NCBI GenBank assembly: GCA_024704765.1
Contig: JAKMXF010000120.1
Location: forward strand, 1 to 18,435
Origin: Oopsacas minuta
Lineage: Eukaryota; Animalia; Porifera
Reading direction: 5' to 3'
Length of the DNA stretch: 18,435 nt
In this document: piece after piece, positions 576 to 18,435 of the stretch
Layout of the letters: each line of letters begins with the position of its first letter
Position numbering within the stretch: position 1 is the first letter of the stretch
Position numbers and translations under genes: made by a program
Notes under the pieces: model-generated
What the model was told of the DNA's origin: nothing
Database searches by the model: none
Seen by the model: only the letters and a program-made list of their open reading frames with translations

Positions 576-725
576 AGATATCCTGGCTAGACCACCATGT
601 GGCACATCGATTTCGAAGTTTCCGACGAAAAACAATTGACGAAATAATAAAGGACAAAATTGCCATATGATAGCATACGGTATATTATTTCTAGTACTGT
701 TCTCAATTATAATTATTTTATTCAG

Positions 726-801
726 AACACTTGAGGGTTGAAGAGATAACTCGTAGATTGAAAGTAGCAGATTATGGCATTCCTCTAAATCCAGAAGACA
801 G
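726..801 (+). CDS. SF1: SF1 exon (76 nt), xHLRVEEITRRLKVADYGIPLNPEDR
   Basis: ttttattcAG acceptor at 724-725; GT at 802; phase 1 to 2. Confidence 0.9.
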
Positions 802-3800
802 GTTATTCTTATTAGTTATTGGTGTACTTGTCCCTATTCGGATAAGAGGTACACTCAGATTGTGTGTACTATTTGTTTCACGAAGTGTACGTCTTATCCG
901 AGTTATACTGTAACTCTTTAGAAAATTTGAGTTTTTGTCTGATATTCTGTGATTTCCAGAATTCCAGTAAAAACTAATATTGCAGCAATATTGCCCTCAA
1001 GGGCCCTAGTTTATACTATTTTGGAAAATTGGTGAAAGGAGAAAATTTATCATGTGGTTTCTAATCCCAGGTCTCCATCCCCTGAGCCTGAATATGGCAG
1101 AGACGGTAAGAGAGTAAACACGAGAGAAGTTCGTTACAAGAAGAAGATGGAGGATGAGAGGCATAGATTAATTCTAGAGAATCAGATTTTAAATCCAGAT
1201 TACAAGGCACCTATGGATTACAGGTATGTATTATTAATTAGAATTCTTCTTTGATTTATAAGCATTGAATAATATTTTTGTATATGATTAATTCGATTCA
1301 GCATGGAAACGAAAATCAGTATAAGTATTAACCGAACTACGTCATATCCGAGTATTCTTCCTATACGATGAGTACAAGAATATATAATCCGTTGTTGAGA
1401 AAGTACGTATTAAGCTGAGTACGTCCGAACCGACTTCTAATGCATTGCGTTTATTTTTGTTTAATTTCCATAAATTATAGACTCCCAGCTCAGAGATATC
1501 AAGAGAGGATAATGCTACCAACAGAACTACCTCCTAATACAAACTTCATAGGGCTAATTATAGGCCCGAGGTAAGGATATAGATTATAGTAATTACTAAT
1601 ATCAGGGACGAAACTAGGGAAGGTTCATGCCATAAGTAAAAAGTTAATTCCATATTTCTGTTCATGCTAAAGTTCATGGTTCACATCATGTTCTTGCAAT
1701 ATGTCAAAAGTAAATCTATGAACTTTGTTCATGACCTGCCAACACTGGACTTCAAAAAATCTAAAAATCCCAGAGAGTAGCTACACAACATCCATATGGC
1801 TCAGGCCTGCCCCTAGTTTCGTCCGGACTAACCACCTATTTTCCATTTAACTAACAAGCCTATTAACATAACAAATTTACACTAATCTATATGTAGGGTG
1901 CTTGGATCAATATAATGTCTATTGTAATTGTAAATTCTGTATTAACTCTCTATTCTCAGGTTTTAGACTTTCTGTATTTTTCTGTATTCTTAACTTTTTT
2001 TCGTTAAGGGGGAACTCTCTCAAGGAATTGGAGAAAAAGGTAGAAACAGACTCGACTAACTCATTTCTCTTTCAATTAACCTGTAGCTCTAGCTTAGTAT
2101 TAACAACATATACAACTGACGAACGAGCGAATGGTGACATCATCTGGATTACTCGATTACTTAGCCTCGAAAGATTTATTTTTCTTATAGCTCTTACCAT
2201 TTTAGCCATAATTATTATAGCTTTTGTGTATTAATATTCTTAGTAGGTTATTGTTCCATTTTGTTTTTCTTTCAACAGACTGGAACGAAAATAATGATCC
2301 GTGGGAAAGGCTCTAGCAAGGAAGGAAAGGTATTTTGAATAACTACCGTCAATTCAAGCTCAAGGGACATAGTAGTTCGATATAACCGATGGAATATATT
2401 TTATTTTGGGACCATATTTTTGGGACAATTTTAGACTTCGATATAACGGGAGGTGACTGTATAGGAGACTCTGATTTATGCTAATATAATTCGATACCCG
2501 AATTTCTCATTTCTAGTGTGCTGCTTATAAATCCCATGGAAATTCCTAACTTCTGGTAAAAGTAGCTCCGTCTTTGATATAGTTTTATATTTGTAGCTTG
2601 GGAAAGACGGACAACCAATGCCTGGAGAAGATGAAGCATTACATGCTCTCGTGAGTGGAAATGATCTCACAACTGTGAATGTAGCTGTCAAAAAGGTGAG
2701 TTAAATATGGGCGTACCGAGGGAGCGGGACATACCATAATCTACTTCTTTACGGTTAGATCAAAGACATTATTGCTGATGCAATACAGAATCCAGGAAAT
2801 GACAATGAATTGAAAAAGACTCAATTAACTGAGCTAGCCAAACTGAATGGAACATTCAAATTCGAGGACATGGTGAAGTGAGTTAATAAATAAACATTTG
2901 TATGTACATACTATTGTGTAAACTCCACGAATGCGGGCTGTGGAAACGGGGAACTAAATGGAGTGAAAAATACGGGGAATTTGCCACAAACGGAGAAACG
3001 GGGTAACATTTAAATTCAAACTTTCAGAGAATTCCTGAACATCATATTTCCTGTGTCTTGTATTTAGATGTCGTAATTGTGGATCAATAGACCACAATAC
3101 ATGGGATTGTCGTGAACAGAAGAACGTGACTGCACAGATACGTTGCTCTAATTGCGGTGGAATGGGACATATATCACTTGATTGTAAAGCTACCACCTTC
3201 ACTCCTCAAGAGAACCAGGCTAACATGGATAAAGAAGTTTGTAGAACTTACATAAGTACCGTATTTACTCGAACAGTAGCCTCCTTTAAATATTAAATTG
3301 GCGATTATAGACAATATCCTAGTGATTGGACGTAGCTTAGGAATTTCCTTCTATGTAATTATTCCACCATATAGAACTTATATAGAGCTCATATAGCCTT
3401 GAACTTCAAAACAACAGTAATTGACTACAGTCATCCCATTATATCGAAGCCCGAGGGACCGTGATTTTCTTGGTATAAGCGGAGTTGTCTATTTATTTTA
3501 ATTTCTATAGTACCAGACATTCCGTGCGTTGGTAGACAAAGAAATGGGTATAACAACTACGACAGCTGATCCAGTAGCACTCCCTCCAGTTCATGTACCC
3601 ATTGCACAACCACCTCATCAGGACCCAGGTAGAGACTACGGATCCCAGAGAGGGAGAGTGATGAGAGGACAGAGAGGGAGAGGTAGACCTGGATATGGTA
3701 GAGGAGATTTCGGAGGGTATAGACCACCGTATGATGGTTATGGATATACAGGAGGGTATGACCGACCTCCTGCACCTCATTCAGCCGTACCACCTCCAAA

Positions 3801-4620
3801 CTCTATCGTACGTATTCCTTATATGGATTTAATTTCTATTGTTTTAATATTGTCGAAATTTTGAGTCACTTGCATTAATCTAGCTCTACACATTTGTTAC
3901 TCTACTATGTTATTTTGTTATTATTTATAGACATCTGAGGATAATCCTGGAGGATTAACTCTCTACGATCCTAGTACTCAACCTAAGAGGAAGAGAGAGT
4001 GGGGAGAAGAAGGATACGGTAAGATATAAACAGAAATTTCTATCAAATACACTGAACTATTTATTGTAAAGTAGACTACGCGTAATTGGGTCGCTTCGGG
4101 ACTAATAATATCAGCTTTTGTATAAAAGCTTGAGTGGAAATATGTACAGTGAAACCGCCACAAACGAAGCCTGTAGAAAAGGAGAATTTCTGGAAACGGA
4201 ATGAAAAATATTATAAGTGTGAATTCCAAGCCTCATACAGATGAACCGCATTTTTCGGCGTCACTGGCAATCTGTTTGTGGAGCTTACACTGTACATGTA
4301 TGAATACATTCAAGTAGCATCTTTAGAATGTAAATGTACTGTGCTTTACTGAAGAATTTCTCATTACATTTTAAGAGATATTATATCTATGACCATTGTA
4401 CAATAAATCTATATAGGAACATACGGATACGAACAAGGTTACGATCAAGGGTATACACCAGCTTGGAATCCTTCTGGAGGCTACTACAGTCCTGGACAAT
4501 ATCCAGGACCAAGGAACACGTACCCAGGGTATCAGGACCCTAACTACATGTACCAACCTCCCCCACCCCCACCCCCTCCTGGGCATACTAGTGGACGGTA
4601 TTCTCAGTACGGATATCAGA
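726..4620 (+). CDS. SF1: Splicing factor 1 / branchpoint-binding protein, core exons (5'-partial)
   Basis: GT-AG exons 726-801, 1071-1223, 1481-1570, 2009-2039, 2279-2329, 2597-2695, 2759-2877, 3068-3236, 3511-3807, 3931-4018 and 4417-4620 splice in frame. They give HLRVEEITRRLKVADYGIPLNPEDR-SPSPEP (SPSP phosphosite helix), KH domain ([48 protein letters not shown]), QUA2 (LKKTQLTELAKLNGT), two CCHC knuckles, MDKEY and a low-complexity tail. Confidence 0.95.
836..910. mobile_element. Family-F MITE remnant (CGGATAAGACGTAC motif) in an SF1 intron
   Basis: The reverse complement of the right end plus TA, TACAGTATAACTCGGATAAGACGTACAC, is 27/28 identical to 18279-18306. Confidence 0.7.
1071..1223 (+). 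CDS. SF1: SF1 exon (153 nt), SPSPEPEYGRDGKRVNTRE...DY
   Basis: ctaatcccAG acceptor; GTATGT donor at 1224; SPSP motif. Confidence 0.95.
1481..1570 (+). CDS. SF1: SF1 exon (90 nt), start of KH domain to [10 protein letters not shown]
   Basis: ttatAG acceptor; GTAAGG donor at 1571. Confidence 0.95.
1603..1827. mobile_element. Degenerate TIR element (hAT-like) in an SF1 intron
   Basis: Perfect 14-bp inverted repeat GGACGAAACTAGGG (1606-1619) / CCCTAGTTTCGTCC (1811-1824). Internal GTTCATG repeats. No TSD found. Confidence 0.55.
2009..2039 (+). CDS. SF1: SF1 micro-exon (31 nt), [10 protein letters not shown]
   Basis: Long pyrimidine tract then ttAAG; GT at 2040. Completes the GPRG loop of the KH domain. 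Confidence 0.9.
2279..2329 (+). CDS. SF1: SF1 exon (51 nt), [17 protein letters not shown]
   Basis: tttctttcaacAG acceptor; GT at 2330; conserved IRGKGS.KEGK. Confidence 0.95.
2346..2459. mobile_element. TA-flanked MITE, family D (TTCGATATAAC motif), in an SF1 intron
   Basis: Right end GACTTCGATATAACGGGAGGTGACTG-TA. Related to copies at 3428, 4813 and 7143. Confidence 0.7.
2597..2695 (+). CDS. SF1: SF1 exon (99 nt), [19 protein letters not shown]...VKK
   Basis: ttgtAG acceptor; AAG|GTGAGT donor at 2696. Confidence 0.95.
2759..2877 (+). CDS. SF1: SF1 exon (119 nt), QUA2 region
   Basis: ttAG acceptor after a 63-nt intron; GTGAGT donor at 2878; IKDII...ELAKLNGT. Confidence 0.9.
3068..3236 (+). 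CDS. SF1: SF1 exon (169 nt), two CCHC zinc knuckles
   Basis: tatttAG acceptor; CRNCGSIDHNTWDC and CSNCGGMGHISLDC; ends NMDKE, GT at 3237. Confidence 0.95.
3257..3286 (+). mobile_element. Solo Tc1/pogo-type TIR fragment
   Basis: TA-CCGTATTTACTCGAACAGTAGCC. An inverted GAAATACGG-TA end occurs at 4646-4656. Confidence 0.45.
3428..3491. mobile_element. Family-D MITE remnant
   Basis: TA-CAGTCATCCCATTATATCGAAG matches the reverse complement of the 2459 end. Confidence 0.6.
3511..3807 (+). CDS. SF1: SF1 exon (297 nt), YQTFRALV... Pro/RGG/YG-rich
   Basis: atttctatAG acceptor; GTACGT donor at 3808; in frame with MDKE. Confidence 0.85.
3931..4018 (+). CDS. SF1: SF1 exon (88 nt), TSEDNPGG...PKRKREWGEEGY
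   Basis: ttatttatAG acceptor; G|GTAAGA donor at 4019. Confidence 0.85.
4147..4292. mobile_element. TA-flanked MITE, family B, in an SF1 intron
   Basis: TACAGTGAAACCGCCACAAA versus reverse complement of the right end TACAGTGTAAGCTCCACAAA (17/20 including TA). Confidence 0.75.
4417..4620 (+). CDS. SF1: SF1 exon (204 nt), Tyr/Gly/Pro-rich (YGYEQGYDQGY...PPPPPPPP...YGYQ)
   Basis: atatAG acceptor, phase 1 in. Consensus GTGAGT donor at 4621, phase 1 out. Confidence 0.8.
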
Positions 4621-4812
4621 GTGAGTTATTACACGAGTATATAGCGAAATACGGTAGAATTCAGTACAATTATTACATAATATTCGAATAGGAATTGTAT
4701 TATAATGAATGGAAACTACATTTCAAAGTTTAGACCCTGATCGTTAACTTCGCATAAGAGTAGTATTTACATGTGTAATATGTTGATCAGCGAAAATTAA
4801 CACAATATAATC

Positions 4813-4983
4813 TACTCAACTCCCCGTTATATCGAACACGGATATATCCAAATACCCGCTTATATCGAGGTCTGAATTTAAAATATGATCTCAAAGCAAT
4901 ATACATTTAATCTGCTATACAACAACTTATATTCGAAGTAATTATCGCGGTCCCTTGAGATTCAATAACGAGAATTGATTGTA
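4813..4983. mobile_element. Family-D MITE, between SF1 exon 4620 and the HIP1 stop
   Basis: 4826-4876 is 44/51 identical to the reverse complement of 7259-7309. Right end AATAACGAGAATTGATTG-TA. Confidence 0.7.
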
Positions 4984-5136
4984 TTATGGATTAAACAAAG
5001 AATATATAATTATAACCAATAATACTCAACTCATTCAATTCATATCTAAAGTCAGTACTGCAATAGAAATGAATTAAGAAACTAAAATGTATTACTCATT
5101 GTAAGATTCTTATATACAATTATTAATAGTATTATG

Positions 5137-7907
5137 TCAATTAATATCACCGGTTGCTCCCTCGCTAGTATGATATGTAGATTTTCGTAGGTTCATCAGT
5201 TTTAATCGCGCTTTTTCAAGCTTGCTTTCTAGCTCCAGCACATTGATAGACATATCTCTTTCCAACTTTTTCGCACGAACATATGATAAATTCGTGAAAT
5301 CGATCTCTTCGTTTTCCTCGATTTGGTGTGCTCCCACTTGTGCTGAGGCTATTACCTGGCCAACACATTCTGAAACTTTGCTAGAGGCTCCTTTCACATC
5401 TTTCAAACAACCACTCTCTTTATCTGCTTTTACTTGTGACGTCACAACTAACTGTACGGTACTAGCTGAAATATCCTTGGATACCACCATGAGCTCTTGG
5501 TATGAGGCCCTGCCATCCACACAGCGATCAGCTGTCTCCACCAGATAAGTAGCGCCCTGTCCTACGATCTTTGCCGCAGAAATAAGTCCCTCTGTCCATC
5601 GATGGTTCTTCCTATAGAACTCCTTTGAACTGTGTTCACCTCCCTCTGAAATGATTTCCCTCTGCAAATGTTTTGATTTCTCAATCAACAATTTTATCGC
5701 AGCCATTAACCCTGTACAAGCACCAAGGATATTCCCATTAACTTCAAGTTTAATACCACTTAACTTGTTTTTAGAAGCTTCTAGAATTTCCTGTATCCGT
5801 AACGCAGCTTGATCAACAGCTAAAGTAGTTTGAGCCATTTCCGCTTCAACTTGATCCTCGATTGTAGTTGTATCATCTTTTTTGAATTCACTCAATTCTC
5901 TTTCAAGCTGTTGTACACGTGTACTACTGTGTGTAAGTTCTGCCTCATATGTGGCTGTCTTATTCATGAACTCAGCTCGTACTGTCTCCAATTCATATAC
6001 TCTCATGCCTATTTTCTCCTCTAAATCACTACAGTTAAGATTCAGTGTATTTACTTCAGATTCAAGTTCACTTTGCCTTGTAGCACCTACTTCAGCAACT
6101 TCTAATACAGATTTTAACTGAGCTATTTCCTCTCTGTATTGTGCAAGCTCTCCTTCAGTGTTCATGCGTGACTCCTGCATTTCACTCTGTAGCAGAGATT
6201 CATGTTCATGTTTACTCTCCAACATTATTTGTAAATGTTGTAGTTGCCCTTCTAGTTCAGCGTTATCTTTGAGAGAATTCCCAAGTTCCTCATTCGCCTT
6301 GTTTAGGTTACTTTTCAATTGTCCGTGAGTTTTAAGAAGTTTGACATGTTCCTCTCTCAATTCAAAATACATCTTTTTAGCTTTTCTAGTGTTTCGTCCA
6401 ATTTTGCTTTTTGTTTATTCAAGGTTTCTTCCATTTTAGTTCTTTCACGCAAATTTTCAATTTCAAAGGTTAGTCTCTGTTTCTCCTCTAGAGCCTCATC
6501 CCTGGTCTTTTTCAGCTCATCAAGTGCAATTTTTAATTGTGTCAGTTTGGTCCCTAGTGCATGAATTTGTTTATCTTTTCTCTCTCCTCCTTCTTCCAAT
6601 TCCTCGAGTCTCTGTTTCAATTCTAAATTCTCCCTCAACAGCTGTTCGATAAGATCATCTTTCCCACTTTCATCCGGTATACTTTGCTCTGGGAGAGGTG
6701 GAGGGGGTAAGTTCTCGCTAATCGGTGACATTAGCTCCACTTCATTAATATTCTCTTCTACAACGAATATCGGTGGGTCGATAGACAATTCTCGTATCTT
6801 TGTTAGAGAACTGACATAACTAAGTGATTTTGATGAGAGTAGGAATTTTCTCATTGCATTGTAATGTCTGTAGTAACGTTCTCTGTGTCCTGCTAGCAAC
6901 TCAGCTGGTAGATTGGAATGTAGTAGTTGCATTACATGGTAACTAAGGTCGTAGATACCGGTTTGATCCTCAATAACAGGTACGAGAGGTGCTACTCTAC
7001 ACTGAGCTACCTGTGTGGTGTAACCTTTAGATGGGTCTAGCTCTCCGAAAATTGCACCTTGTAGAGATAGGAGAGCACTTTCATATTCAAGGATATCTAC
7101 CTCCATTTGGAAAAGATGATCTCCTGGAGAATAAATAATATACAAATAACCCTAAAATCCGTTACTTTACCTGGGATTATTACCAAACTAAAAATGACAT
7201 TTATGTCCACGTTGCCACGTATATGTTACTTTACTGTTTGGGACCATATTTGTACAGTTTCAGACTTCGATATGAGCGGGTATATCAATATATCCGTGCT
7301 CGATATTACCTAAGGTGACTGTAATGAATTCCTAATGGATCAACTCACCAGATGTGTATTGCACTTTAGCAAGCTCAATCTTGAAAGTTGAAGGTACAAC
7401 CGGGTACTTAACATGGAACTTAATCTTCTCAATAACAACTCTGAGATAAGTTAGACTCAGTTTATTATAACCTCCTTGGAACATAGCCCATCTCTTCTGT
7501 AGTGTATTCAAATACGATAAGTATTTAGTGCTACGTGAAATTGACTTAGCATGACCATCACGTAGAACTCTATGCAGTACATACATAGCTTTCCAACAAA
7601 CTAATGCTTGACTAGCTAAATCGTGTTTGCTAAGTGTTGTCCAGAATACGTTACAGCCTTGCTCCTTCCATGTAGCTATTATAATTGAACGAATATGTTT
7701 CTCTTTGGGAAGAGATTCCACTTTATTGTTTAGAAGTTTATCAATCGCTTCTTGAACTTCTTTTACCATTGAATCAGATATGATAACTTGTGTTGAGCTT
7801 GGTGGTCTGTATTGAGTCTGTAATGGTATGTCTATACCTACACCAGATTCTTGTCTTATCACTGCTCCATCTCTTTGGACTCTATCTCTATCACCATTGC
7901 TAGCCAT
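5137..7907 (-). CDS. HIP1: Huntingtin-interacting protein 1 / HIP1R / Sla2-family endocytic adaptor (ANTH, coiled coil, I/LWEQ-THATCH); about 848 aa once a 1-nt frameshift is corrected
   Basis: Exon 1 is 7907-7349 (agaATGG start; KEKHIRSIIIATW...CWKAMYVLHRVLRDGH ANTH; G|GTGAGT donor). Intron 7348-7124. Exon 2 is 7123-5137 (tctccAG acceptor; KDDLIEQL and coiled coil; FYRKNHRWTEGLISAAK, KADKES, VLELESKLEKARLKLMNLRK THATCH). Frame switch at 6374-6378. Confidence 0.93.
7143..7321. mobile_element. Family-D MITE filling most of the HIP1 intron
   Basis: Right end CTCGATATTACCTAAGGTGACTG-TA is clear. The left boundary (TA at 7141-7142) is approximate. Confidence 0.65.
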
Positions 7908-7982
7908 TCTATTACCAAACTATTATAATGAATAGAAGTATACATTCATTGGATCCGATTCAATCAAATGTTCGTTGACATA

Positions 7983-8210
7983 AAGTGGGTATCGCTTATA
8001 AGAACACCGTTATAAGAACCATCCTCTGGAAAACGGTTCTCATATACTCTTGTATACTTTACACGGGTTATTATAAGAACATATTTTTGACTCCCAAGGG
8101 TGTAGAGACATCGGAATCGGGCGATGAGTCAGCATAGCGGCCCACTTTATATTACTATGATAAGATGGGTTTCCTACTACCCTGGGGGTTCTTATAAGCG
8201 ATAATCACTG
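7983..8210. mobile_element. TA-flanked MITE, family A (TTATAAGAAC motif)
   Basis: TAAAGTGGGTATCGCTTATAAGAACACC versus the reverse complement of the right end TACAGTGATTATCGCTTATAAGAACCCC (24/28 including TA). Confidence 0.85.
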
Positions 8211-8341
8211 TACAATCTTAAAATGATCTTATAACTATCGCGGACAAGTAGGAGGGATGTCCTTGGGGGCTAATATTATAGTCAATATATTCCGAATCTA
8301 TCTGTGTTCCTTCGATTCATTTAGCCTAATTGAAAATATTA

Positions 8342-8435
8342 CAGTGAAACCTCCACAAATAGGGAAATGAGGTAGCATTTTTCGGCGTCTCTGATACCGT
8401 ATGTAGAGACGCCGAAAAATCTACCTCTGCCACTG
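8342..8435. mobile_element. 94-bp family-B derivative with an internal foldback
   Basis: TA-CAGTG...CACTG-TA. Left end matches 4145 at 19/20. Internal inverted repeat 8369-8392 / 8405-8427. Confidence 0.75.
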
Positions 8436-9192
8436 TATGTAGTAATTAATGACATTTTGCATACGTGCGATGAAGTTCAACTGTGGAACTATTTTTAAAC
8501 CAAACTCAATATAATTATTACACTAAAATGTCTTATCCATTACTCATCATATATACTACGAATACAATGCATACTACAGGTCCTATTCTATTTCATGGAA
8601 ACAATATAGATACCAACCTTAAGATCCTTAGGATATATGATTATATCGTAAATATCAAGTTTTATAAGATTATGAATTACATAGACATACATTTTAAATA
8701 CTCGGAAAATAGCACCATAATCTCTAAATATTATCAAGTAATACTCAGTTAGGTAATTAATGAGATTTATGTCGTCAATCCATAAAGCCTTACTGATTAG
8801 TAAAGATGATTGTAATATTAACCAGTGAATAGAAAGAAACTGTATACATTGTAATTGTAATTGTATTAGTTTATGTATGTGTTCATGACCTTAGCTCTTT
8901 TCCAAATAGCTGAGGGTCTCAATAACAAAACCAACTTGCAATCTGAATACTATTATAATGGGATACATCATAAGTACGCATGCCATACGTGATATGTGGT
9001 TGCCAGAGGGGACAATATTCGGTTACACGCTAGGGTAATGAATTATTCAATTAATTTCTGAAATTCAGATGTCGATATTTCAACTAAGTTTCATCCTATC
9101 TTTTTCCACTGACATTTTCATAAAAACTGCTGTATTATATTGATTTTAAAGCCATATATGGAAATACAATAAACTTTATGTATTGTCAACAG

Positions 9193-9590
9193 GTAGTAAG
9201 ACAAGTTGGCCAGCACCCACTCCCAACCCTCCTCCACCTGGAGCTACACAAGACAACAATACACATCAGTCACCACACTCAGATCAATATTACCAACCTC
9301 AACAACAAGCTAACTATCCTGCATATCCTCCTGGCACATACCAGCAACAAACAGCTCCACAGAAAACACAAGGTAACCCACTACCTGGAAATCCACAGCA
9401 ATCAGGCTATCCTACTGGTTATTATGCAAACAATCAACAACAACAACAACAATATCCAGCTAGTACAGCCTCACATAATGATCAGATTACAGTAACACTA
9501 GCTACTGCTGCTCCCCCTCTATCACAAACTCAAGGACAGCCCCCAAGGAGCGAGGCTCCGGTAGATAAGGGGTATAACTACGGAGCATGG
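9193..9590 (+). CDS. SF1: Internal Pro/Gln/Tyr-rich coding exon (398 nt), most likely a distal SF1 exon
   Basis: attgtcaacAG acceptor and TGG|GTAAGT donor at 9591. The only frame open from acceptor to donor starts in phase 1, matching the phase-1 SF1 donor at 4621 (A+GT=Ser). No ATG of its own in frame. Composition resembles an SF1 tail. That it is an exon is well supported; the SF1 assignment is inferred. Confidence 0.7.
9435..9452 (+). repeat. (CAA)6 microsatellite encoding polyQ
   Basis: caacaacaacaacaacaa within the 9193-9590 exon (QQQQQQ). Confidence 0.85.
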
Positions 9591-10064
9591 GTAAGTAATT
9601 GTGATAACATTATTATAAGAACCTGTTAATAAATTCGATTTTGATACAAAATATAATTTTGAGAACATGTGGACCCCAGATTGGAGACCGTTAGTCAAAC
9701 ACTAGCCATGGGCTCTTTAGGTTCTATGAGCTCTATGAACCCAAGCTGACTCAAAGTATTAACACTTCCATATATGGATATATAAACATAATATACAAAC
9801 CACAACAATATATTCTGGAAAACCAATATCATAATACGTAAATCGAGTTTAATGTAATTTAATGTCCTCAAATACTATAATTCTAGTAATTATATTAATT
9901 AATACGTCATATCAATATGCCTATTGGATTAAATACACTATTTTATCCACAAAAATAGATACAAAAAATCCTGGAAAAAACTTTTGTACTATTCTGTCCC
10001 AATTTGCTTAACTCTATTACTGCCTCAATGAAATTTAATAAGAATTTATTATTTTCATTTTCAG

Positions 10065-10070
10065 CAATAG
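10065..10070 (+). CDS. SF1: Probable terminal coding exon (CAA TAG) ending SF1 as ...GYNYGAWQ*
   Basis: Strong acceptor ttattattttcattttcAG, in phase 0 with the donor at 9591. Total modelled CDS is 1781 nt = 2 + 593 codons. Confidence 0.45.
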   Translation, partial: Q

Positions 10071-11547: not shown

Positions 11548-12088
11548 AGTACATACCTCTGTTGCCATGGCAACATAGGTATGCCTCAATTCCCATCAGC
11601 ACCCTATGGTTTCAATGTGGTAAACTCTAAAATATATTTTTGCTATGAAATTCGTTACTTATGATGTGTTTAATTGCTTGTACACATTTACTTTCAATGT
11701 CTCTCCAATATATATCACATACTCTCCATAAGGAATACAGAAAGTATCCTTGTTGTAAAACGTATTAATGATAGCATCCAATTACTTTGGGTTCAAATAT
11801 CTTACATCTAAAGTATAATTTCATCACTAACCAGTATAATCATATCGATAAAGTATATAATATGTGACACAGATTGCCAGACATAAACATGAGCTACTTG
11901 TATATGATACTATAAAGATGAGAGTTATAAGAAGCAGAACGTCAATATAGCAGTTTATCTATATATTGAAAACCACGATTAGTATTTTCCACCAGCTTTT
12001 AAACTAAACAAAGAATGTTATTCACGTATGTATGTTAAGCTTTAAAAACTATAAAATGTTTGAAGTTTCATAAATCACAAGGTTTAAG

Positions 12089-12095
12089 TATAAAA
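12089..12095 (+). promoter_or_regulatory. Candidate TATA box of bZIP gene 1
   Basis: TATAAAA with an Inr-like TCAGATT 25 nt downstream (12114-12120), just before the ATG. AT-rich background. Confidence 0.3.
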
Positions 12096-12124
12096 ACTAA
12101 AAAGCAAGAATATTCAGATTAAAA

Positions 12125-13739: not shown

Positions 13740-13880
13740 CAGTGACCCCTAGGCGCAACTAGCCTCATGAGTCTGGATTGGGCAAAAATGACGTCATGCC
13801 CACCCACTCATAAAATCGCCAAATATTTGACCAAAAGGGTGGCCACTTGCTCACCTAGAATGGCCTAGTTGCGCCCATAC
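13740..13880. mobile_element. Probable MITE remnant
   Basis: TA-CAGTG start. Perfect inverted repeat GGCGCAACTAG (13752-13762) / CTAGTTGCGCC (13865-13875). Confidence 0.45.
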
Positions 13881-16790: not shown

Positions 16791-18280
16791 AGATAACTGA
16801 TCTCTTATTGCTAATCAAATTTGCTGCACTTTTAAACTGCTATTAGCTATTTAGGTTTATACAAGCATTGCACACTTATATAATGTATAATATTGAGTTC
16901 TATGAAATTCACATTTAAACGTATTAACCTTTGTAATTAATTAGGGGCGGATCCAGGATTGTGGGGGGAGCTTGGTGTTGTGAGCATTTGGATCGAATGA
17001 TTTCCAGATACGTGATATTAAAACGATAAAGGAAGAACATCATTAAATAATAGAATTACGCGAATTAATATTTAAAATATTTTCAATCTTCTTAGCTTAA
17101 TTAAATATTTAATATTTTTGTTTCAGCTCTACCGCCCGCATCAAGTTTACCTGTCACATGAATATTGTCATTATTGCACCATTTTATCAGTGAATTCAAC
17201 TACACAATATATTTACTAACTAACGGGCGAATAGAAGTGATTTTATCTTCACAGACCTCCTTTAACACGCTTTCATGAATTCCACTTTATATTATTATGA
17301 TGTCATGAAATAATGCGATATGATAATGAAATACCGCCCGCCCACATGCTTAGATGAACCAGCGTGTGGAACTGAAACAAGTTTCTCATTAACAGGGAAT
17401 AGTATAGATCGTTTTTTCATACTTGCCCCCAGCGGGACTTGCTCGTTACGCAACTGTATCCAAGTTCTATAATATTAATCATCATCCAGTGTATCAAAAC
17501 AGCTGAGTAGAAATAGTTTCATAATTAAGTAAAATAATTCCGCCCAGTATAATCTTTCTAGAACAATTCTGGAGAAATAATACCCAAAACGTAAGTACAC
17601 TTCATCATAAATAGTTCAAATATAAGAAAATACTTTCTTACTAATCAACAACACTTTATCTCTATGCAAAAAGAGATAAGTTATTTTGTTTATTAATAGA
17701 GACGTATACAAATCTAGGTTCCAATTCAGTAAACTTCGAACTTTTGAAAGGTCAAAGTTGCAACTCACCACACGAAAATATTAAAGTCACTATTCGGCAA
17801 TTAAGAAAATATCAGAAGTGAAAGTATTATACATCCGCTCTTTATCGGAAGTAACGTTTGTATATGTAACTTATCTTCTGTTGGCGTAAGTTTAGGTTCT
17901 GGCTAGAGTAGACCTGTTGATAAATTATTCAAACTTTTTTGACTAATTCCAATTTTTACGGATTATATTTTAAACTAACTAATCATATCAGATTTGTACA
18001 ATTGGTAGAATTTCACTGTTAGTACCTCAGACTTTAGGAGTAGTATTCGTAATTATATCAAGTCAGCGTCTTCTCATTATACTCATTACTGACATATTCA
18101 ACCTCGGTTTTGTGTGGACAGGAATGATTGTAGAAATATTCAAGAGGGGGACGACCGACCTGGTTTTTTGTAAAATATATTTATTTAATACCAAATTCAA
18201 ATACAGTACTTAGAATCTCGTAAATACTAACTTCCCACGTAGCCCACCATAGACAATGGTACTCTGTTGCATACCATATA

Positions 18281-18435
18281 CAGTAGAACTCGGATAAGAC
18301 GTACACTTGGTTAAGACGTACTATTTCTTATATCCCTAAATACAGTCATCATTATTTGTAATGCAAACATATTCGGATAAGACGTACACTCGGTTAAGAC
18401 GTACTAATTTCTGTTTCCCGAGGGGGTACGTCTTA
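18281..18435. mobile_element. Family-F TA-flanked MITE running off the right edge
   Basis: TA-CAGTAGAACTCGGATAAGACGTACAC. Four (G/T)TAAGACGTAC-type repeats. The window ends within the inverted copy GTACGTCTTA. Confidence 0.8.

Follow-up and report, generated by a model that had tools for sequence, protein, structure and literature searches.

Does the splicing factor gene SF1 of the glass sponge Oopsacas minuta (Hexactinellida) carry another conserved gene, on the opposite strand, inside one of its introns? The window analyzed here is the complete contig JAKMXF010000120.1 of assembly GCA_024704765.1, 18,435 nucleotides (nt) in length. A sequence-only reading of it had proposed that a HIP1/Sla2 gene on the minus strand is nested in a long SF1 intron, and that a P/Q/Y-rich exon beyond HIP1 encodes a part of the SF1 C-terminus. 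I compared the window with six loci in five other sponge assemblies, namely the contigs behind open reading frames (ORFs) of the distal exon and of HIP1: L002 and L003 (assembly ERZ25071281), L004 (ERZ26869290; near-identical to Vazella, on a short contig of 11.9 kilobases, kb), L005 (ERZ25072730; also a short contig), L006 (ERZ25766962), and L007 (ERZ25069837). Homology searches were run exon by exon, and the order and strands of exons in the relatives were determined by tblastn with single O. minuta exons as queries. The comparison suggests that SF1 exon 11 is spliced over HIP1 to the distal exon (hereafter exon 12), so that HIP1 is nested antisense in SF1 intron 11 (positions 4621-9192, plus strand, 4572 nt). 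I infer the joining junction and put the probability of this reading at roughly two in three.

It was found that the minus-strand gene occupies positions 5137-7907, with coding exon 1 at 7907-7349 and coding exon 2 at 7123-5137. Pfam recognized ANTH (PF07651) in two pieces (1.3e-18 in exon 1 and 3.5e-10 at the start of exon 2) and I/LWEQ (PF01608) over the whole profile length (3.3e-42). ANTH plus I/LWEQ on this strand is the architecture of HIP1/HIP1R/Sla2, which bears out the identity first given to the gene. Among named proteins, it is best matched by HIP1-like proteins of Oscarella, Ixodes, and Capitella. The two exons are separated by an intron of 225 nt (7348-7124), absent from the sequence-only reading, and the two-exon structure is also present in L002 to L007.

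On the plus strand, eleven proximal coding exons of SF1 with AG/GT borders and an open frame lie at 726-801, 1071-1223, 1481-1570, 2009-2039, 2279-2329, 2597-2695, 2759-2877, 3068-3236, 3511-3807, 3931-4018, and 4417-4620. In Pfam searches with single exons, the helix-hairpin domain SF1-HH (PF16275) was found on exon 1071-1223 (E 1.1e-19) and a CCHC zinc knuckle (PF00098) on exon 3068-3236 (E 4e-08), which shows two CX2CX4HX4C motifs. The KH domain could not be scored on single exons, which are too short for it; the precomputed matches of the 486-amino-acid NCBI model of SF1 comprise SF1-HH, a weak KH_1, KH-I_KHDC4-BBP, and zf-CCHC. The helix-hairpin domain, the two CCHC knuckles, and the Pro/Gln/Tyr-rich low-complexity C-terminus are shared with SF1/BBP proteins, as is probably, by the precomputed matches, a KH-QUA2 region. 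Unlike in these proteins, the N-terminal U2AF-binding part is absent from the window, and the TVTLATAAPPL...NYGAW motif of exon 12 has no detectable counterpart beyond these sponges. A search upstream of position 726 and in the corresponding regions of L002, L006, and L007 revealed no N-terminal U2AF65-binding exon; it may sit outside the window. The tblastn matches are colinear for exons 2-11 in L002, exons 3-11 in L003, and exons 1-11 in L006 and L007, with 64-100% amino-acid identity except for exon 11 of L006 (51%).

Is the arrangement of the two genes kept among the relatives? The common order and strands are SF1 exons, antisense HIP1, exon 12, and a bZIP ORF, the last of which is not on the short contig of L005. 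The full order from SF1 through HIP1 to exon 12 was found in L002, L003, L006, and L007, while L004 and L005 carry the part with HIP1 and exon 12 and no SF1. The synteny of SF1 and HIP1, which the sequence-only reading had put forward for comparison, is therefore kept in order and strand wherever both genes are present. The HIP1 coding region is wholly inside 4621-9192 and likewise lies between the host exons in L002, L003, L006, and L007; the interval matching intron 11 is about 4.8-5.5 kb in the relatives. In O. minuta, the 3′ end of HIP1 and SF1 exon 11 are convergent and 516 nt apart.

The splice sites at the two ends of this interval are also kept. Exon 11 ends at position 4620 with ...TAT CAG A|GTGAGT in phase 1; the donor at 4621 had been read correctly base for base. 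A donor at the identical codon position and in phase 1 is present in all four loci that hold exon 11, as A|GTGAGT in L006 (as in O. minuta) and as G|GTTAGT in L002, L003, and L007. Exon 12 (9193-9590, plus strand, 398 nt) begins after the acceptor ttgtcaacAG|GT at 9192/9193 in phase 1 and ends with TGG|GTAAGT in phase 0; in O. minuta it lacks an in-frame ATG. Its phase-1 acceptor, its GTAAGT donor, the missing ATG, and the P/Q/Y-rich content had all been described correctly. The AG|GT acceptor in phase 1 and a GTAAG donor after the exon are kept in six of six related loci. In every species, an in-frame stop lies 4-19 codons upstream of the acceptor. Since there is this stop everywhere and no Met in O. 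minuta, exon 12 is unable to start a protein. The introns flanking the exon 11 donor and the exon 12 sites do not align among the relatives, though the sites and phases are kept.

Exon 12 is 126-219 codons long across the six loci, the differences being due to in-frame poly-Q runs. The pattern ...W....NPPPPG...DQYYQ... is kept at its start and ...D..TVTLATAAPPL.Q.Q...KG(Y/F)NYGA(W/S) at its end; TVTLATAAPPL is invariant in the six loci, and the terminal NYGAW is found in five of them (NYGAS in L006). The ratio of nonsynonymous to synonymous divergence (dN/dS) is 0.02-0.24 in the conserved blocks with dS near 1, values that are biased low because the blocks were picked for their conservation, while saturated silent sites beside unchanged residues are still clear. 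Synonymous divergence is about 1 between O. minuta and all others and 0.3-1.7 among the others; thus, at least three deep lineages are in the comparison. By these substitution patterns, the peptide is under purifying selection. Judged by the kept splice sites and phases and this coding constraint, exon 12 is a real internal coding exon that requires an upstream exon with a phase-1 donor. The poly-Q runs (CAA/CAG) show large in-frame expansions in L005 (3240-3803), L006 (7595-8131), and L007 (6375-7016), all on minus strands, reaching about 100 codons in L007 versus six consecutive Gln residues in O. minuta.

Joining exon 11 to exon 12 is economical, since each has the sole conserved phase-1 donor or acceptor without a partner. 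A 13-exon model, consisting of the eleven proximal exons, exon 12, and an end at position 10065, was joined locally and its stops and phases were counted; it is open for 592 codons, the number of residues previously given for the joined protein. Of the nesting first proposed, the real internal exon on the SF1 strand, the antisense HIP1 in between, and the conserved sites and phases thus stand, while the junction 4620^9193 is still deduced.

Several observations weigh against the join. The phases of the exon 11 donor and the exon 12 acceptor would match by chance alone in one case out of three. Glass-sponge microsynteny is generally high according to the searched passages of Francis et al. 2023 (PMC10282587), so that the conserved order of genes argues only weakly for a common transcript. 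In the O. minuta genome paper, RNA was mapped with TopHat at an intron maximum of 5000 nt and genes were predicted with BRAKER1/AUGUSTUS; this RNA-guided annotation, with introns of such length permitted, left exon 11 and exon 12 unjoined. No counterpart of exon 12 outside these sponges was found with HMMER or with a word-based protein search of exon-like lengths, which excluded full-length SF1, and its homology to other SF1 C-termini is therefore undemonstrable. Finally, the one transcript of exon 12 that was found, in the glass sponge Vazella pourtalesii, joins it to a different, species-specific upstream exon, without the SF1 body.

How is exon 12 represented in the databases? Its translation is 100% identical to a part of the 149-amino-acid 'hypothetical protein LOD99_11193 [Oopsacas minuta]'. 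With exon 12 as the query, an exhaustive HMMER search gave four proteins: the O. minuta model, two ORFs of ENA assemblies, and an irrelevant fish mucin. No match was found in the ESM Atlas, nor in a scan of JGI metagenomes with the exon 12 alignment. One ENA cluster of exon 12 ORFs also contains P0005, the transcript-derived ORF of V. pourtalesii (EukProt). A protein search with P0005 returned only genomic ORFs of the related sponges, P0005 itself, and the fish mucin.

P0005 begins with MHDKEARMVYENI-C-ASQSSW, and its longest reported ORF is 148 amino acids. Its 5′ part maps to the SF1 strand at about 1955-1995 of L004, within the intron of HIP1, where a T|GTAAGT donor in phase 1 closes it. 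This 5′ exon is joined exactly at the conserved exon 12 acceptor, about 2 kb downstream, by cis-splicing. Plus-strand transcripts therefore cross the 5′ part of HIP1. Past GAW, the tail of P0005 differs from the genomic read-through, which means that the exon 12 donor is used as well. In Vazella, then, exon 12 is spliced at both its acceptor and its donor. The P0005 5′ exon is not conserved in L002, and the similarity of L007 stops before it. It resembles a cryptic exon peculiar to the species or a part of an incompletely processed precursor, and it could just as well mark an independent start. The tail of P0005, 16 residues long (TQTLPHPQPQSGFKPH), is not encoded in the 11.9 kb of L004; across all loci, exact 5-mers and a BLOSUM scan gave only weak matches, to other frames of the Pro-rich exon 11. 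Its absence from L004 would place the last exon of the exon 12 transcripts more than 7.4 kb away, or else the Trinity contig is chimeric.

Could exon 12 then belong to a separate, sponge-specific small gene for a P/Q-rich protein, with its own promoter inside or just beyond HIP1 and with short, fast-evolving 5′ exons? SF1 would end after exon 11, and HIP1 would merely overlap or adjoin the small gene, rather than being nested in SF1. The Vazella transcript speaks for this, since its exon 12 is preceded by a start-codon exon in the HIP1 intron within a 148-amino-acid longest ORF that lacks the SF1 body. So do the own start exon of the NCBI model LOD99_11193 and the finding of this type of C-terminus in no SF1 protein elsewhere. 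However, the positions of the two proposed 5′ exons are not homologous, and even close relatives conserve neither of them. The four-codon start exon of the NCBI model (MHTT, 8567-8579, plus strand; model P0001, 8567-9629) came from a predictor that is unable to nest genes. The 13-mer of this exon is absent from L002, L003, L004, L006, and L007 and is present in L005 without a GT donor; it is probably a gene-predictor artefact, as its distribution suggests. No conserved alternative 5′ exon for exon 12 was found in the compared loci. A Pro-rich match upstream of exon 12 in L005 was rejected because it is a G15/C20 homopolymer pair and not an exon: at about 4085-4170 (reverse-strand 4375-4460), in the stretch separating HIP1 from exon 12, the pair consists of G15 and then C20, and another homopolymer, C14, comes 130 nt later. 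The coverage of this contig is 2x, and the runs are probably an artefact of assembly or sequencing.

Only one part of the interval from 7908 to 9192 aligns syntenically in L002, L004, and L007. This is a non-coding block at 8695-8790 (TACTCGGAAAAT.GCA...ATGTCGTCAA), which corresponds to about 8600-8680 in L002, about 3545-3615 in L004, and about 13750-13830 on the reverse strand of L007. It has no conserved plus-strand ATG followed by a donor; it may represent the promoter of HIP1 or, alternatively, an untranslated 5′ exon of that gene. With a separate gene, the conserved phase-1 donor of SF1 exon 11 would also have no conserved acceptor. I consider a separate gene possible but unlikely, and the splicing of exon 11 over HIP1 to exon 12 is preferred.

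Is the nested HIP1 of O. minuta a working gene? A frame break, missed in the sequence-only reading, lies in HIP1 exon 2, where the A run at 6382-6385 is one base short. The O. minuta gene needs a frame change exactly there, and an uninterrupted HIP1/HIP1R/Sla2 frame is not found in this assembly. The stretch KLDETLEKAKKMYFELREEH is read in a single frame by five related loci, whose exon 2 ORFs are intact with 650-655 amino acids. If the break were real, the O. minuta gene would be a decaying pseudogene, and the annotation indeed splits the gene at this point. But there is no other defect: the two halves have open frames apart from it and share 54-86% protein identity with the five intact relatives, and the break falls in a homopolymer of a PacBio-based assembly (PacBio, pilon-polished, according to the O. 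minuta genome paper). Because it is the sole defect and both halves are open and conserved in an assembly of this kind, the break is very probably an assembly error, and a pseudogene is an improbable explanation.

The predicted protein resembles the HIP1/HIP1R/Sla2 adaptors in its N-terminal ANTH domain, central coiled-coil-like region, and C-terminal I/LWEQ actin-binding domain, the last being about 51% identical to that of HIP1-like proteins of other animals. It differs in length, with about 840 residues versus 940-1140 in the other animal matches, and in having just two coding exons. The central domains PF27524 and PF16515, listed for other animal HIP1 proteins, are absent among the precomputed matches of the O. 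minuta protein.

A trans-spliced leader at the acceptor at 9192, by which exon 12 would begin an independent mRNA cut from a longer precursor, is most improbable: such a leader is reported in the glass sponge A. vastus in about 4% of long cDNA reads (searched passages of PMC10282587), but it would have to supply the start codon, since exon 12 lacks an in-frame ATG in O. minuta and a conserved one in the relatives, and the Vazella transcript is cis-spliced to genomic sequence 2 kb upstream.

If exon 11 is spliced to exon 12, SF1 would be the host gene and HIP1 a compact two-exon gene that lies antisense within the long intron 11, fills most of it, and converges on SF1 exon 11. Exon 12 would add 132 residues to the low-complexity C-terminus of SF1 and would be spliced once more, to a short, poorly conserved last exon. 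Where the long intron is left unspliced, or where the transcript ends within it, SF1 would end soon after exon 11. The read-through past exon 11 meets a stop after one codon in L002, L003, and L007 (GGT TAG, a stop that the retained donor provides) and after 23 non-conserved codons in O. minuta. Thus, both a short and a long C-terminal isoform would be possible. In human SF1, C-terminal isoforms arise by alternative splicing. It was previously suggested that HIP1 expression could be coupled to the choice of the SF1 isoform, which is speculation. That the nesting is kept because it is functional, with convergent HIP1 transcription deciding whether SF1 ends after exon 11 or continues to the distal exon, is very doubtful. 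If true, the level of an endocytic adaptor would be tied, throughout the glass sponges, to which C-terminus a core splicing factor carries.

What does the public annotation make of this locus? It lists an NHL fragment (1-309), a 486-amino-acid SF1 (667-4691, with its stop at 4689-4691), a 362-amino-acid I/LWEQ protein (5137-6225, minus strand), an ANTH protein (LOD99_11192; 6357-7907, minus strand), LOD99_11193 (8567-9629; 149 amino acids), and two small bZIP-like ORFs. In it, SF1 is truncated, HIP1 is cut in two at the frame break, and the distal exon is given a four-codon start exon. The division of the locus into four models is explained by a predictor that places no gene inside another, together with the one-base frame break in HIP1. 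A predictor of this kind would end SF1 by reading through into the intron (hence the stop at 4689-4691) and would invent a start for the distal exon, and the models match this. In the searched passages of Francis et al. (PMC10282587), 2432 nested genes (12.4%) are given for A. vastus versus 83 in the O. minuta annotation, the low counts in some genomes are ascribed to a disabled predictor option and to the annotation method, and many nested genes are described as conserved.

The O. minuta locus resembles the nested genes of A. vastus described there in that a compact gene lies wholly in a host intron and is conserved between glass sponges, and it resembles the A. vastus glassin locus in that automatic annotation misses or mis-splits the nested gene. 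It differs in that the host junction comes from comparison and not from RNA. The pair of an SF1 host and a HIP1 guest was not found in the searched passages. As far as these passages go, nesting is already known as common and conserved in glass sponges, and SF1/HIP1 is another example; since about 12% nested genes are reported there for a sister glass sponge, it is not a new phenomenon. What is new here, on the comparison of sequences, is the SF1-HIP1-exon 12 arrangement, with splice sites and phases kept across up to six related loci, together with the splicing of exon 12 at both ends in a Vazella transcript that starts on the SF1 strand within HIP1.

Classical antisense nested genes are OMG, EVI2A, and EVI2B in an intron of human NF1 and F8A in an intron of the factor VIII gene. 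As in these nests, the guest is antisense in an overlong host intron, which is 4572 nt in O. minuta versus a mean of 341 nt (with 1.59 introns per gene) in the O. minuta genome paper. Unlike in them, an ancient housekeeping gene is the guest here, and it takes up most of the intron. The spare intron around HIP1 is about 0.5 kb on the 3′ side and 1.3 kb on the 5′ side, or about 0.4 kb on the latter if the block at 8695-8790 is a 5′ exon.

The main gain is the correction of four O. minuta gene models, namely the truncated SF1, the two halves of HIP1, and the orphan LOD99_11193. The locus is also a well-conserved addition to the nested genes that are under-called in the O. minuta annotation, which bears on claims about glass-sponge gene content. 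It offers a defined place where a housekeeping host and a housekeeping guest are transcribed head-on, usable for tests of transcriptional interference. Knowledge of how nested genes originate and work is left unchanged by it.

Downstream of exon 12, the bases CAA TAG (Q and stop) at 10065-10070 on the plus strand follow a strong acceptor (tcattttcAG|) at 10064 and are a candidate for the last coding bases of SF1. Between exon 12 and the promoter region of the first bZIP ORF (bZIP1), nothing aligned at the syntenic position in the relatives, and the tail of the Vazella transcript is a different one. That exon 12 might be a 5′ exon of the bZIP gene was rejected, since in four species the bZIP ATG is preceded by in-frame stops and a TATA-like motif. 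The stops lie 2-16 codons upstream of the bZIP1 ORF, and the TATA-like motif (TATAAATAC) is kept about 60-70 nt before the ATG (12035-12124 in the window, about 13010-13125 in L002, and about 6380-6497 in L004). With a TATA-like motif of its own and these upstream stops, bZIP1 is not a continuation of exon 12. It fits an independent single-exon gene, and both bZIP paralogues are retained in L002, L003, and L007.

On the other side of SF1, the adjoining NHL-repeat gene (13-309) runs in the direction of SF1 in O. minuta, whereas in L007 (18398-19669) the two are on opposite strands. It is absent from L006, where a MutS5-like gene (17072-17718) abuts SF1.

The sequence after exon 11 had been taken for transposon debris. 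A short interspersed repeat was found there at 4826-4895, with two further copies, one inverted at 7237-7309 inside the HIP1 intron (82%) and one at 2405-2444 in an SF1 intron. Transposon debris is thus a plausible, partly borne-out description. Another repeat, in the first visible SF1 intron (835-912), recurs at the contig end at 18279-18435 in a direct (76%) and an inverted (92%) copy and is tandemly duplicated there. This terminal duplicated repeat may explain why the contig ends at 18435.

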